Assembly (NCBI RefSeq): GCF_003918875.1
Contig: NW_025765316.1
Coordinates: 124,001-188,000 of the forward strand
Source of the DNA: Haliotis rubra
Taxonomy: Eukaryota
DNA length: 64,000 nt
Reading direction: 5' to 3'
Both the position numbers and the translations under genes were made by a program. Below the pieces are notes generated by a model. That model had not been told where the DNA came from, made no database searches, and saw nothing but the letters and a program-made list of their open reading frames with translations. This document shows, piece after piece, positions 3,814 to 57,743 of the stretch (the stretch's first letter is position 1; every line of letters starts with the position of its first letter).

Positions 3814-4964
3814 TCACTTGAAGAGTTTCTTGAAAACCTTCCCAGCGGCTGGAATGATACGTGGGAGAAGATCTCCAATGAATCCTGGCAGTGCAGATCC
3901 AAGAAGGCCCATTATTCCAGGTTTCTCCTCATTGACTTCTTTTCTCACCACCTCTCGAAAATCTGGCTTCTCTGCCTCAAGTTTCTTAATGACTTCCCCC
4001 TCTCTCTTCTTACTCTCAAACTCCATCTGTCTCTCTGATGCCTCCTTTCCTATCTTCATTTCTTTTATGGCTAATTTCAGATCTTCCATTTCCTTTGAAA
4101 GTGCAGCCATCTCACTCTCCTCTTTCTTCTCTGCTTCTTCAACTTTCTCTCTCTCTAGTGTTTTTATTCTCTCCTCCAGTTGCTTCCTCATATCCGCGTC
4201 TTCATCGTGTTTCATCTGAAGCTTCAGCTCGAACTCTCGCCTGATTTCATTTCTCTCTTCCTGGATCTTCTGTTCATGTTCCTGTGTCAACTGTTCCTCC
4301 CTCATCTTCATGTTCTTCTCTGCCTCAACATACATTTCACTTGTGTAACATTTGCCTCCGTTGTCAAGGAACACCTGGTCAACCAGTGTGATGAAGTCTT
4401 TGACATCCTGTTCCTTCTCCGCATCACAGCCTCTGTTGTTGAAGGCGATGCATCTTTTGCGGCACGACTTGACTAGGGCTTGCAGTTTTTCGGGTACTTT
4501 CTTTAAGTAATCATGTAGGGATTTATTGTCATGATTTAGATCATCTTTCCTGGTGAAGAGAACAATGAGATAGTTCAACATGTCATCTCCGAAGACCTGT
4601 CTGAAATGAGCAACCGTGTCCTGTTCCTCTTGGGTAAAGCGGTCAATCCTGACAACGAGGACAAAGGCATGAGGACCAGGAGCTGTCATGCCGACACATT
4701 TCACCACCTCCTTAGTGATTTCAGCATTTGTCATACCTGTATCGAACAACCCAGGACTGTCGATAATGTGAATATCCCGATTAAATCTGGAAGCTCTCCC
4801 TCTCTGGCACCTTTTGGTAACAGATGATCCACTGGCACTTGATTCAAAGGCTGCATTACCCAGGATGCTGCTTCCGGTTGTACTTTTTCCTGACCCAGTT
4901 CTTCCAATGAAAACTAGCCTTCTTTCAATGATGGGACAGTCAGCTGACCACTCACACCCACCTC
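3814..4964 (-). CDS. GIMAP-A: terminal exon, AIG1/GIMAP GTPase + coiled coil + C-terminal amphipathic helix
   Basis: G1 GRTGSGKS, G2 SVT, G3 DSPGLFDT, conserved box PGPHAFVLV..RFTQEE, G4 TRKDD, AFNN. Phase-1 acceptor ttgcag| at 4966-4965. Spliced model 9462-9459 + 6750-6595 + 4964-3814 = 1311 nt, 436 aa. Confidence 0.95.
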
Positions 4965-5059
4965 CTGCAATGTACATCATAATGCTATGTAATGTCTTGG
5001 ACAAGTATAAAATAATAATATATGAAACTGTATATTAACGCATCTCTTTGTGCTTCCGG

Positions 5060-5298
5060 TTGTTTGTTGTCATTTGATGTTTAACGCCGCACTCAGCAAT
5101 ATTCCAGCTATATTGCGGCTATGAGTAAATAATCCAGCTGGAGCCAGATATTCCCGTGAACAACAGCATGAACATCGATCTTCGCAAATGGGATACGATG
5201 CCATGTTTTTAACAAGTCAGTGAGCCTGACCATCCGATCCCATTAGTCGCCTCTTAGGTCAAGCATGTTGAAGACCCATTTTTACCCGGATCTTCATT
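5060..5298 (-). mobile_element. Dispersed SINE-like repeat, family B
   Basis: Reverse complement of the about 235-bp element at 27649-27885, 37540-37770 and 52030-52262, including the gctggaatattgctgagtgcggcgttaaa tail. Confidence 0.75.
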
Positions 5299-5838
5299 TC
5301 TGTAGATAATATCCTTTAATTAGGTTATGACTGGACTATAATTGATAGGGTAGGCAGGTTCAGTTATATGTTTTCCTGCTTGTCTTCGTACCCAACAGCG
5401 TGGAACGTTGGTGATGATATCGGTTGGCCTTGTTCTGGTTCTGTTACTTACAAGCCACTAGAGGGCGCGACGTAAAACCCAATACATGTAGTAAGTGGTT
5501 ACTGTCAGTAATAAGTCTATATTCACATAAACAAAGAACACAACAATTTCTGAAAATACAGACTATCACGTATTCCATGTACGTACGCCATGTGTTATGG
5601 TCACTTGAAACGAAGGAATTAACTCAGGAAGGAACATTCTTGAATTCTACTGTCTAGAATCATTATATTGTCAGAGGAATATAATTGGCACTTTGTGAAA
5701 TAGTTATGTATTGTGGTCGGCACAGGCAGTGGGCAACAGTATCGGGTATAGTGGAATATTACACGGAACAATTACACGAAGAGTTTGGCAGTTTGATTCA
5801 TGCAACACAATTACGGGCCCTAATATAATATGTAGAGA

Positions 5839-5950
5839 ATACTACACGAGGTCTCATTACATACGAATTATACGAAACAAGTGTCCTCCAGAAACCATAG
5901 CAAGGTCACGAGTTTCGTTTAATTCGTATGTAATGAGACCGAGTGTGGTA
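5839..5950. repeat. About 40-bp inverted repeat (hairpin), probably part of a non-autonomous DNA element
   Basis: atactacacgaggtctcattacatacgaattatacgaaac pairs with gtttcgtttaattcgtatgtaatgagaccgagtgtggtat across a spacer of about 33 nt. Confidence 0.7.
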
Positions 5951-54730: not shown

Positions 54731-55909
54731 CTGTGAAAGTTGTAGGGCGATCACATATGCTGTTATTTGAACTTGAAGTTCTGTACGAATCCATGTTGCC
54801 AAATGTGTCAACAGCTTGTGGTCGGTGCATCAATTCATGCGGCCATATTGGTTGATGATAAAACGACAGCAGTCTTTGTAACCATTCGTCTTTGGACACT
54901 CGACACACTGTCCCTTTTTGGAATGTGTAAACCTCTGGTCCTGCTTTATCATAGAACACAATACCTTTGAAATGGTTTATGTTAACACACAGTACACATT
55001 TGTCTGTACCCTGTTCTGGAATAGCATATGCTGCTATCAAACCAGAAGGTGCTTCCAGAAATGACCCTTTCAGAGTTAAAACGACCAGGTCTGTTTTCAA
55101 TTTATTGTTTAGACTTTGTATCAGTTTCTTTATGTCAAAGCAGAGATTAAATGAATTAATATAACGCTTCTTTGTTTTATAACCCTGATCATTAAATGGT
55201 TTCTCGGAGATGCCTATGTAGAATCGTCCACCTCCCTGAAGCTTTGACATAGAAGTGATGTTATGATTCAGTTTCAGATCGTGCCAAATACAGTCAGTTA
55301 CATTTTCAACTGCTGCTTCACCTTGTGCCTGTTGTGGCAGCCATTTCAACTCTGACTCTCTGTCTTCATGCAATGGTATATCGTCAACACTAGTGTGTGG
55401 AATCATGTTTGCAGGGATTTGCGTTTCATTATCTCCACCACGCTTCAATATCGTAGCAATGACGGAACATGGAGCGTTTACATTTTCAAAGTCATTTCGC
55501 ATCTTTGTTTTGCTGTCTAAAGTCGATACGCCACGAATTTGTTCAATTTTGAATAACAGAAAGTCATGTATATTTTCAAAAGACGAGATATTCGATAACA
55601 ATTTCCGGGAAAAATAGTCACAGTATTGACAACCCTCCGGAAGCAGAGTAGAAAATCGTTTCACGATAGCTTCATCAAGTAATTCCAGGTCCCTGTCCCA
55701 TTTCTGCTGCCCGTCAACGTGTATCAGGAGAACCCCACCGTCTGAATTCAGCAAGGCGTTTGCTGCCTTTGCCAGCTGATGTAAAGTGTCCTCCTTTTGT
55801 TGTGTTTTCTTGCCCGTTACAGTGGCTCTGCTCACATGTTCTAAAAGGATGCTTTCATTAAAATGTTTCTCTTTGTACTTCTCTTCTGTTCTTTTGCAGG
55901 ATTTGCATT
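54731..55909 (-). CDS. Schlafen (AlbA_2, two-lobed) core-domain exon, copy 1; open frame, predicted to splice into GIMAP-E
   Basis: ANALLNSDGGVLLI (vertebrate CALLNSGGGVI), HEDRESELK (E-x4-E-x-K), SKLQGGGRFYIGISE (FANTxGGYLFIGVDD), GPEVY...VSKDEWLQRLL. 1179-nt phase 1-1 exon, gctacag|...CAG|gtact. Confidence 0.85.
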
Positions 55910-55974
55910 CTGTAGCAAATGAAAAAAACAAACATTCAAAGTGTGAAGGAGTTTAAAAAGCGCTTTCCACTTAC

Positions 55975-56021
55975 AATCGTCCATGAGGATGTGTTTGTGG
56001 ATCACTATCAAATATCTTAGG
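55975..56021 (-). other. Putative start micro-exon upstream of the Schlafen exon (duplicated at about 57809-57855)
   Basis: ttttcccag|...ATG GAC GAT T|gtaagt followed by a clean 65-nt intron. Splicing gives T+AA = TAA, a stop at codon 4. Confidence 0.5.
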
Positions 56022-56563
56022 CTGGGAAAATATACAGAGCACTAGCTATTATTCAAACGCATGAAACAAGTTTCAGTTTGGATGTGATGAAGCGCGTTTA
56101 ACATGCCACAGTGGGTAGCCTAGTCGTTAACGCGTCATGCTAAAGACCCGGGTTCGATTCCCACATGGGTACAATGTGTACAGTGCATTTCCGAAGTCCC
56201 TCGCCTTGATACTCAGACTGGCTAAAAAGATCGTTGATCGAAAATATCGTCGACAGGAAAAAGTAGTTATGGTTATCGATATGAAAATAGTTTCGTCGAT
56301 AATATCGTTCATAAACTTCATTTCATTTTTAGGTTGCATGAAAATACATGTATATTTTTTTAAAATAGTGGGAGGGTCAAAATCTTTCTCGGATTATTCA
56401 GAACAAAACAAATGGTATAGTGTTCTGAAAACAACTGTAGTTCTTTAGGTTCAGACAGCAAAACCTACAAAACGGAAAACAAATCCCAGGAGTCGATTTC
56501 AAGAATTATACATACATGTGACAGTTTCAGGAAAAAAGGTAAACAAAGTTCAGATTACAGTAC

Positions 56564-57743
56564 CTGTGAAAGTTGTAGGGCGATCACATATGCTGTTATT
56601 TGAACTTGAAGTTCTGTACGAATCCATGTTGCCAAATGTGTCAACAGCTTGTGGTCGGTGCGTCAATTCATGCGGCCATATTGGTTGATGATAAAACGAC
56701 AGCAGTCTTTGTAACCATTCGTCTTTGGACACTCGACACACTGTCCCTTTTTGGAATGTGTAAACCTCTGGTCCTGCTTTATCATAGAACACAATACCTT
56801 TGAAATGGTTTATGTTAACACACAGTACACATTTGTCTGTACCCTGTTCTGGAATAGCATATGCTGCTATCAAACCAGAAGGTGCTTCCAGAAATGACCC
56901 TTTCAGAGTTAAAACGACCAGGTCTGTTTTCAATTTATTGTTTAGACTTTGTATCAGTTTCTTTATGTCAAAGCAGAGATTAAATGAATTAATATAACGC
57001 TTCTTTGTTTTATAACCCTGATCATTAAATGGTTTCTCGGAGATGCCTATGTAGAATCGTCCACCTCCCTGAAGCTTTGACATAGAAGTGATGTTATGAT
57101 TCAGTTTCAGATCGTGCCAAATACAGTCAGTTACATTTTCAACTGCTGCTTCACCTTGTGCCTGTTGTGGCAGCCATTTCAACTCTGACTCTCTGTCTTC
57201 ATGCAATGGTATATCGTCAACACTAGTGTGTCGAATCATGTTTGCAGGGATTTGCGTTTCATTATCTCCACCACGCTTCAATATCGTAGCAATGACGGAA
57301 CATGGAGCGTTTACATTTTCAAAGTCATTTCGCATCTTTGTTTTGCTGTCTAAAGTCGATACGCCACGAATTTGTTCAATTTTGAATAACAGAAAGTCAT
57401 GTATATTTTCAAAAGACGAGATATTCGATAACAATTTCCGGGAAAAAATAGTCACAGTATTGGCAACCCTCCGGAAGCAGAGTAGAAAATCGTTTCCCGA
57501 TAGCTTCATCAAGTAATTCCAGGTCCCTGTCCCATTTCTGCTGCCCGTCAACGTGTATCAGGAGAACCCCACCATCTGAATTCAGCAAGGCGTTTGCTGC
57601 CTTTGCCAGCTGATGTAAAGTGTCCTCCTTTTGTTGTGTTTTCTTGCCCGTTACAGTGGCTCTGCTCACATGTTCTAAAAGGATGCTTTCATTAAAATGT
57701 TTCTCTTTGTACTTCTCTTCTGTTCTTTTGCAGGATTTGCATT
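56564..57743 (-). pseudogene. Schlafen core-domain exon, copy 2, with +1 frameshift
   Basis: 1180 nt; A6 run at 57443-57448 versus A5 in copy 1 splits the frame into ORFs 57409-57804 and 56550-57551. Confidence 0.85.

Follow-up and report, generated by a model that had tools for sequence, protein, structure and literature searches.

How do neighbouring paralogs come to carry different N-terminal domains on the same GTPase core? The question is raised by a 64,000-nucleotide stretch of the genome of the blacklip abalone Haliotis rubra (C426:124001-188000, on a contig of 201,173 bp), referred to here as the window, which holds five AIG1/GIMAP genes (A to E) out of a nine-gene cluster. Four further GIMAP exons lie on the same contig to the left of the window, and the H. 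rubra genome contains at least 83 AIG1 matches. From A to E the module content is one NZF finger (a RanBP2-type zinc ribbon), one NZF, three NZFs, none and a Schlafen core, just as the initial annotation had listed it. Very probably this is a tandem cluster laid out on one inherited gene plan in which all junctions are in phase 1, that is one base into a codon, and in which modules come and go in frame.

Under this plan a gene would open with a very small ATG exon whose last base is the first of a codon, continue with zero to three cassette exons which each encode one self-contained domain and have both ends one base into a codon, and close with a large terminal exon, entered at the same codon position, that would encode the GTPase, a long charged helical region and a hydrophobic tail. 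With every junction in phase 1, the duplication, deletion, skipping or insertion of a cassette never breaks the reading frame. Over evolution the plan would give rise to paralogs with zero, one, two or three NZFs and to one with a Schlafen RNase-type core, and within single genes it would allow cassettes to be skipped in frame; each gene would apparently be spliced on its own, and architectures would be stable between orthologs. Exon shuffling classically works on just such symmetric phase 1-1 module exons, as known from Patthy's modular proteins.

A phase-1 frame shared by GTPase and module exons

The open reading frames of A to E match the Pfam AIG1 profile (PF04548) with E values of about 1e-68 and score above its gathering cut-off, A to D with 228-233 bits and E with 122 and 68 bits in two pieces that are split by a TGA codon. 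The G1 P-loop (GxxGxGKS) is present in all five GTPase exons, and the translations show C-terminal parts with long runs rich in Glu, Lys and Gln and with hydrophobic tails. In a word search the first GTPase exon, that of gene A, is 100% identical to a H. rubra RefSeq protein, and all gene models treated here are already automated RefSeq predictions.

Exon limits were set by exact peptide mapping of RefSeq proteins, which between them cover all the junctions: P0001 for A, P0009 for B, P0034/P0128 for C and P0121/P0123 for the Schlafen-E gene (S-E). The four GTPase exons on the minus strand had been proposed to open with phase-1 acceptors at 4964, 20679, 31179 and 53989, and a direct reading of each AG|exon border, with one codon base left upstream, bears this out; P0001, P0009, P0034/P0128 and P0121 read across the four junctions. 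Five W-x-C-x2-C fingers, all on the minus strand, were found by a six-frame motif scan. The five NZF exons and the Schlafen copy S1 are symmetric 1-1, as had been claimed, with AG|...|GT borders and lengths that are multiples of three, and all six thus combine domain limits at the exon limits, phase-1 flanks and a length divisible by three, which are the hallmarks expected of exon shuffling. The second Schlafen copy, S2, departs from them only by a 1-nt homopolymer difference.

Against the Zn_ribbon_RanBP profile (PF00641, cut-off 27 bits) those of A (30.0 bits) and B (28.4 bits) pass, and the three fingers of gene C, which singly score 14.6, 10.1 and 20.8 bits and thus fall below 27, pass when the whole C protein is scored (28.4 bits). 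All four zinc-binding Cys residues (W-x-C-x2-C...C-x2-C) are present in four of the five fingers; in finger 2 of gene C the fourth is Tyr in H. rubra, where the H. asinina ortholog keeps CDAC.

All start exons end in phase 1, as had been supposed, and the literal ATGG|gt occurs only in A and B. Proteins A and B begin with MD (MDGEW in P0009) and hence need an exon of ATG plus one base that is spliced to |AT; the candidate ATG exon of each gene has its own upstream acceptor, and that of A is an internal exon. The start of gene C lies inside a longer exon, and the extra upstream exons of its RefSeq models look like extended 5' leaders. In gene D the GTPase exon itself supplies the ATG, which is preceded by an in-frame stop. 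No ATGG|gt exon is found upstream of S2, and the S-E gene probably starts at ATGGAAA|gtaagt (61936..61930), judging from homology with two other abalones, with which the start of the intron is partly alignable. Two kinds of candidate were discarded: an ATG...T|GTAAGT just upstream of each Schlafen exon, whose junction would create TAA, and the ATGGGT motifs at 9615, 14382, 21966, 25981 and 36490, which lie within copies of a tRNA-like short interspersed nuclear element (SINE).

The frame extends beyond the window. Among 24 GIMAP loci sampled across the H. rubra genome, nearly all GTPase exons lack an in-frame Met before the P-loop and have their best acceptor in phase 1, 29-80 nt upstream; protein models back the phase-1 acceptor at ten of the 24. 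Two proteins, P0021 and P0030, begin with MD and have an ATGG|gt exon joined straight to the GTPase exon with no module in between, and at 8 of 17 other sampled loci NZF exons with a phase-1 acceptor are found upstream. The phase-1 frame is therefore family-wide in this genome and inherited, and it is not special to this cluster. The four acceptors in the window are paralogous and count as one inherited character, not as four independent events, and once the flanks are in phase 1, any lone cassette between them is bound to be 1-1. The consequence of losing the phase can be seen at a paralog on the same contig (L003, C426:100001-110000), in which a 1-nt deletion just after the GTPase-exon acceptor puts the exon out of phase, so that RefSeq can model only a product of 333 residues that starts after the P-loop. 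L003 is probably a recent pseudogene.

The Schlafen-GIMAP gene

Where one Schlafen exon had been assumed there are two, and 57743, the upper limit given in the initial annotation, is the acceptor of S2. The latter repeats S1 with a tandem period of 1,833 bp and is ~99% identical to it, with ~8 substitutions and one extra T in a T-run. The identification as Schlafen holds, both by profile and by fold. The protein encoded by the exon alone scores 18 bits against Pfam SLFN_AlbA_2 and is thus below the cut-off of 25.3. An exhaustive HMMER search recovered 78 relatives, mostly stand-alone proteins of 330-400 residues, and 25 of 42 aligned homologs match SLFN_AlbA_2 at E<=0.01 (best E 6.8e-08). A profile compared with the PDB matches the SLFN11 N-domain over positions 29-366 with an E value of 2.6e-17, and also SLFN12, 14, 5 and 8; a feature search likewise pointed to Schlafen. 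An AlphaFold (AF2) model built on the alignment of the 42 homologs has a mean predicted local distance difference test (pLDDT) score of 89.3, and with this predicted structure the top 25 Foldseek matches are all SLFN (E from 1.4e-16), with target-normalised template modelling (TM) scores of 0.66-0.73 against isolated SLFN domains. E181-x4-E186-x-K188 and E235 of S1 align with the ES..E.K and G..D/E segments of SLFN11/12. These segments hold the catalytic acids of the SLFN active site.

The Schlafen exon is joined to the GTPase exon of gene E, which in the reference carries an in-frame TGA at 53625-53627, a position where the paralogs have Gly (GGA); it is the single in-frame interruption. Transcript-like evidence comes from assembled contigs only, mapped on 52800-58799, whose RNA status is presumed and is backed by the exact skip of a GT..AG interval: in two samples a contig of 891 nt (run X1) and one of 1,450 nt (run X4) join 56564 to 53989. 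Short contigs follow the genome only as far as 57743 and then carry 13 more letters without a match to it, which is what an acceptor there would produce. Two DNA-like runs, X5 and X6, matched nothing but repeats in this stretch. The contigs are 97-98% identical to the window, and a different animal or a very close species may be their source. Both contigs that cover 53627 read C on the plus strand, which turns TGA into GGA (Gly), and the contig pieces over the T-run fit S1 without a gap; the Schlafen-GIMAP frame is thus open in the animals from which the contigs derive. The TGA of gene E is probably an allele or an assembly-specific state and not a fixed pseudogene, and the frameshifted S2 is a feature of this assembly or allele.

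In H. rufescens and H. cracherodii the same gene order is found, with a Schlafen gene, an E-like GIMAP and, on the opposite strand, a D-like GIMAP, and the Schlafen gene starts with ATGGAGA|gtaagt in phase 1. The Schlafen exon and E, fused in H. rubra, are annotated there as separate genes. In both species the reading frame of the Schlafen exon meets a stop 195 nt ahead of the GTPase exon's conserved phase-1 acceptor, and H. rubra has ~640 extra nt that carry the C-terminal extension and the donor of the Schlafen exon. The E-like GTPase exon of H. rufescens (L025, 12498-13620) is open end to end and has no ATG of its own, that of H. cracherodii (L026, 12499-13360) is frameshifted near its 3' end, and both are annotated as N-terminally truncated proteins. 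Compared with their orthologs, the Schlafen exon and E both show a synonymous divergence (dS) of about 0.49 and a ratio of nonsynonymous to synonymous divergence (dN/dS) of about 0.4.

Such blemishes could be read as the signs of a dying gene whose modules are functionless relics. The TGA in the reference copy of E, the frameshift in S2 and the C-terminal frameshift in H. cracherodii would all fit decay, as would the long branch of E in the GTPase tree and the loss of the fourth Cys in finger 2 of gene C. Decay is nevertheless unlikely, since the contigs have GGA in place of the stop and an intact Schlafen frame, the E-like exon of H. rufescens has stayed open, dN/dS is about 0.4 for both exons and the Schlafen active-site motif has been kept.

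The RefSeq models X3-X5 also remove an in-frame Schlafen segment (S1 54941-55320, S2 56774-57153, minus strand; ..QQAQG|PEVYT..). The segment is bounded by a GT..AG pair that is likewise in phase 1, an 'exitron', and without it the domain would lose much of its second lobe.

Turnover of modules and the question of splicing between paralogs

The initial annotation held that the cluster diversifies by gain, loss and swapping of modules. Skipping, loss, duplication, replacement and fusion or fission are all evidenced; rapid turnover within this cluster is not. Skipping is seen in gene C, whose isoform X3 (604 residues) equals X1 (629 residues) minus the 25 residues of NZF2, and at another locus, where P0131 equals P0132 minus the second NZF. 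Rather than one isoform per locus, RefSeq gives several. Loss is seen in a tandem pair of paralogs (L005, C2093:1070890-1077590; L006, C2093:1086334-1093034), of which L005 is short of 374 nt, among them the greater part of its second NZF exon; in the protein model of L005, NZF1 is still followed in frame by the GTPase exon. The GTPase exons of the pair are 99.3% identical. Their upstream intron and NZF region are only ~93% identical, a pattern that suggests gene conversion of the GTPase exon. Duplication is represented by S1 and S2, and also by the three fingers of gene C, which are not each other's closest relatives and are therefore old. Replacement is indicated by gene E, which the GTPase tree places, on a long branch and with support of 92/91, as sister to the three-NZF gene C and the H. 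asinina ortholog of C, and which yet carries a Schlafen exon; for this tree only, E was read through its stop with an X at the break.

Two comparisons count against rapid turnover. Genes A, B, C and D keep their module content in other Haliotis, with orthologs of the same architecture in H. asinina, H. rufescens and H. cracherodii, and wherever the two trees, of NZFs and of GTPase exons, are resolved they are congruent: each finger of gene C pairs with its H. asinina counterpart, and every well-supported pair in the NZF tree, itself weak at 27 columns, consists of orthologous fingers at the same position. From this one might argue for static inheritance, in which an ancestral phase-1 structure and old module differences were passed on and the isoforms and copy differences are artefacts of annotation or assembly. 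The skipping isoforms are indeed Gnomon models, and S1 and S2, being ~99% identical, could be a collapsed haplotype. That nothing has moved is improbable, however, in view of the clean 374-nt deletion that removes an NZF exon between two genes with near-identical GTPase exons, of the Schlafen-to-E join in contigs from H. rubra or a close relative as against the stop ahead of the GTPase exon in two other species, and of H. cracherodii P0036, which has two NZFs where H. rubra P0035 has one.

The cassette arrangement itself has several points weighing against it. Most of the junction evidence consists of automated RefSeq (Gnomon) models, and at sampled loci without a protein model the acceptor was picked by a heuristic. 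The transcript-like data are assembled contigs presumed to be RNA which, at 97-98% identity, may stem from a different animal or a sister species. Assembly or haplotype could account for the S1/S2 duplication, for the frameshift in S2 and for the TGA of E, and the functions attributed to the NZF and Schlafen modules are putative, being read from sequence.

Since all donors and acceptors are in phase 1, it had also been suggested that any upstream module could be spliced to a downstream GTPase exon, and that the Schlafen exon might in this way bypass the broken E. The arithmetic is right, and yet none of the RefSeq isoforms (X1-X4 of LOC124268454, X1-X5 of LOC124268457) is a chimeric protein that joins a module to the GTPase exon of another paralog. 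The contigs join the Schlafen exon to E, and the stop of E is absent from those that cover the TGA site, so that nothing needs to be bypassed. A lead of another kind is that the protein of gene B is numbered isoform X4 directly after X1-X3 of LOC124268454 (gene C), with consecutive accessions, which points to a merging of B and C in RefSeq by way of some common transcript structure; it is not a chimeric protein. A combinatorial unit in which, for example, the Schlafen exon is spliced to C or B is very unlikely despite the joins being in frame and B and C seemingly merged, given that the contigs and isoform sets hold no such product, that the opposite-strand gene D and the 5' exons of C itself lie between E and C, and that a chimera would have to skip the ATG exon of B, which has an in-frame TGA and, if entered in phase 1, leaves phase 0 at its donor.

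A related form of sharing, in which neighbouring paralogs share transcription units and start or module exons of one are sometimes spliced to the GTPase exon of another to give a small combinatorial repertoire, is unlikely too, although it has in its favour the numbering of B as an isoform of the C locus and the E-like exon without an ATG in H. rufescens and H. cracherodii. The nearest phase-1 donor to that E-like exon is the start exon of the Schlafen gene, and one start exon might feed either the Schlafen terminal exon or the GIMAP exon in these two species.

Putative module functions, related systems and surroundings

A T-F pair together with a hydrophobic residue between the third and fourth Cys is the ubiquitin-binding signature of NZFs such as those of Npl4 and TAB2. 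T-F directly follows the first Cys pair in the finger of A and in finger 3 of C, where B has TL and finger 1 of C has TY, and TC also occurs among the other fingers; the residue between the last two Cys is Met in finger 3 of C (TF...M) and Ala in A (TF...A). The abalone fingers share the W-x-C-x2-C...C-x2-C ribbon with the NZFs of Npl4, TAB2/3, HOIL-1L and Vps36, and A and C finger 3 share the TF as well, but B and finger 1 of C differ from ubiquitin-binding NZFs at this pair and finger 2 of C lacks one zinc ligand. By their motifs, the TF-type fingers of A and C would tether the GTPase to ubiquitin chains.

The Schlafen core has the fold of the N-terminal RNase core of vertebrate SLFN5/11/12/13/14, which its profile matches over the whole core and with which E-x4-E-x-K and a third acidic residue align. 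It differs in sharing only 13-17% identity with the vertebrate proteins and in being continued by a GIMAP GTPase where those have the SWADL/helicase region, and in two other abalones it forms a stand-alone protein of 372 residues. With these acidic motifs it would add an RNA-cleaving effector. If the modules act as their motifs suggest, ubiquitin sensing or the cleavage of tRNA or rRNA would be linked to a GIMAP scaffold.

In the snail Biomphalaria glabrata, too, AIG genes stand in tandem arrays, hold a single AIG1 domain per exon, vary in their add-on domains and give splice variants that keep or lack the N-terminal domains (PMC7053062). There the add-ons are death domains, kinase, ARM and Hint (PMC7053062), whereas the abalone genes have RanBP2/NZF fingers and a Schlafen core and follow an explicit phase rule; zinc fingers, Schlafen and intron phase gave no hit when the text of that paper was searched. 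Nothing on AIG1 combined with zf-RanBP, or on Schlafen combined with GIMAP in molluscs, turned up in full-text literature searches, and the NZF-GIMAP and Schlafen-GIMAP proteins, of which the former may be ubiquitin-directed and the latter RNA-cleaving, were found described only in automated annotation.

Classical 1-1 exon shuffling resembles the abalone case in that domain limits fall at phase-1 introns and that duplication, deletion and insertion of modules leave the frame intact. Classical examples mostly concern extracellular modules in matrix and protease genes of vertebrates; here the proteins are cytosolic immune-type GTPases of a gastropod, and the start exon is only an ATG plus one base. 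The integrated domains of plant nucleotide-binding leucine-rich repeat receptors (NLRs) and the variable-exon clusters of protocadherin and UGT1A also combine a constant signalling core with variable add-ons in rapidly evolving tandem clusters, but the likeness is an analogy only, and the abalone cluster offers no evidence for decoy function or for variable exons shared among constant exons. That expanding AIG families with varied add-ons undergo 1-1 exon shuffling is an established concept, and the cluster is a clean but classical case of exon shuffling. It shows in compact form how a family of invertebrate immune genes diversifies: as the codon phase never changes, domain exons become interchangeable cassettes on a constant GTPase exon.

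Table 1. Coding features of the GIMAP cluster in the window (positions are those of the window; 1-1, both exon ends in phase 1)
Feature	Position	Strand	Basis
Gene A, GTPase exon with charged helical region and hydrophobic tail, single large exon	3814..4964	-	Pfam AIG1, E 5.7e-68; equals RefSeq P0001
Gene A, NZF (RanBP2-type zinc ribbon) exon, 156 nt, 1-1	6750..6595	-	Pfam, 30.0 bits; P0001 residues 2-54
Gene A, candidate ATG exon, ccaccATGG|gtaagt, phase 1, ATG at 9462	9459..9505	-	Homologous to ATGG exon of paralog L003
Gene B, GTPase exon, phase-1 acceptor 20679	19544..20679	-	Pfam AIG1; RefSeq P0009
Gene B, NZF exon, 105 nt, 1-1	21040..20936	-	Pfam, 28.4 bits; splice borders
Gene B, candidate ATG exon, caacATGG|gtaggt, ATG at 21729	21726..21763	-	Own upstream acceptor; in-frame TGA before ATG
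Gene C, GTPase exon, phase-1 acceptor 31179	30095..31179	-	Pfam AIG1; peptide mapping
Gene C, NZF1 exon (closest to GTPase exon), 192 nt, 1-1	31762..31571	-	20.8 bits; borders
Gene C, NZF2 exon, 75 nt, 1-1	36065..35991	-	Peptide mapping; borders; absent from RefSeq isoform X3
Gene C, NZF3 exon, 210 nt, 1-1, with TF...M signature of ubiquitin-binding type	45338..45129	-	Pfam; borders
Gene C, exon e3, ATG at 45847, ends at 45775 in phase 1	45775..45878	-	ATG matches start of H. asinina ortholog
Gene D, GIMAP without N-terminal module, divergent from the 5' exons of gene C	47873..49099	+	Pfam AIG1; RefSeq P0024
Gene E, GTPase exon, phase-1 acceptor 53989	52905..53989	-	Pfam AIG1; TGA at 53625-53627
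S1, Schlafen-core exon, 1179 nt, 1-1, spliced to E	55909..54731	-	RefSeq, profile, fold
S2, tandem copy of Schlafen exon, 1180 nt, frameshifted as assembled	57743..56564	-	Donor joins E in contigs and in RefSeq X1, X3, X4
S-E gene, probable coding start, ATGGAAA|gtaagt, phase 1	61936..61930	-	Homology to ATGGAGA|gtaagt of H. rufescens/H. cracherodii

The most upstream modelled exon of gene C (47322-47408, minus strand) and the start of the gene D exon (47796-47873, plus strand) stand head to head, ~400 bp apart, a layout that points to a bidirectional promoter serving both genes. At 86.5 kb on the same contig there is a D-like copy (L002) whose leader is the same.

Three assembly gaps interrupt the window, at 10482-10619 upstream of the gene A ATG exon, at 27341-27487 between the 3' end of gene C and the ATG exon of gene B, and at 36250-36400 within the NZF3-to-NZF2 intron of gene C, 185 nt upstream of the NZF2 acceptor. 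None of these runs of N touches an exon or a reading frame in the window, and the third probably hides no coding exon, since NZF2 follows NZF3 directly both in the C protein and in its H. asinina ortholog. Large satellite arrays with periods of 26, 48, 28, 41/40, 81 and 15 nt (15273-18214, 22213-23353, 31948-35724, 38696-42508, 59061-61178 and 62405-64000) occupy intergenic spaces and introns of gene C and of the S-E gene, and the array at 31948-35724 explains a strong local GC skew. Copies of the tRNA-derived SINE-like repeat (..GGTTCGATTCCCCACATGGGTACA..) lie at 9615, 14382, 21966, 25981, 36490, 56143-56179, 57977-58013 and 58600-58790; the repeat is extremely abundant in all four sequencing runs examined and is the source of many false ATGGGT 'start exons'.

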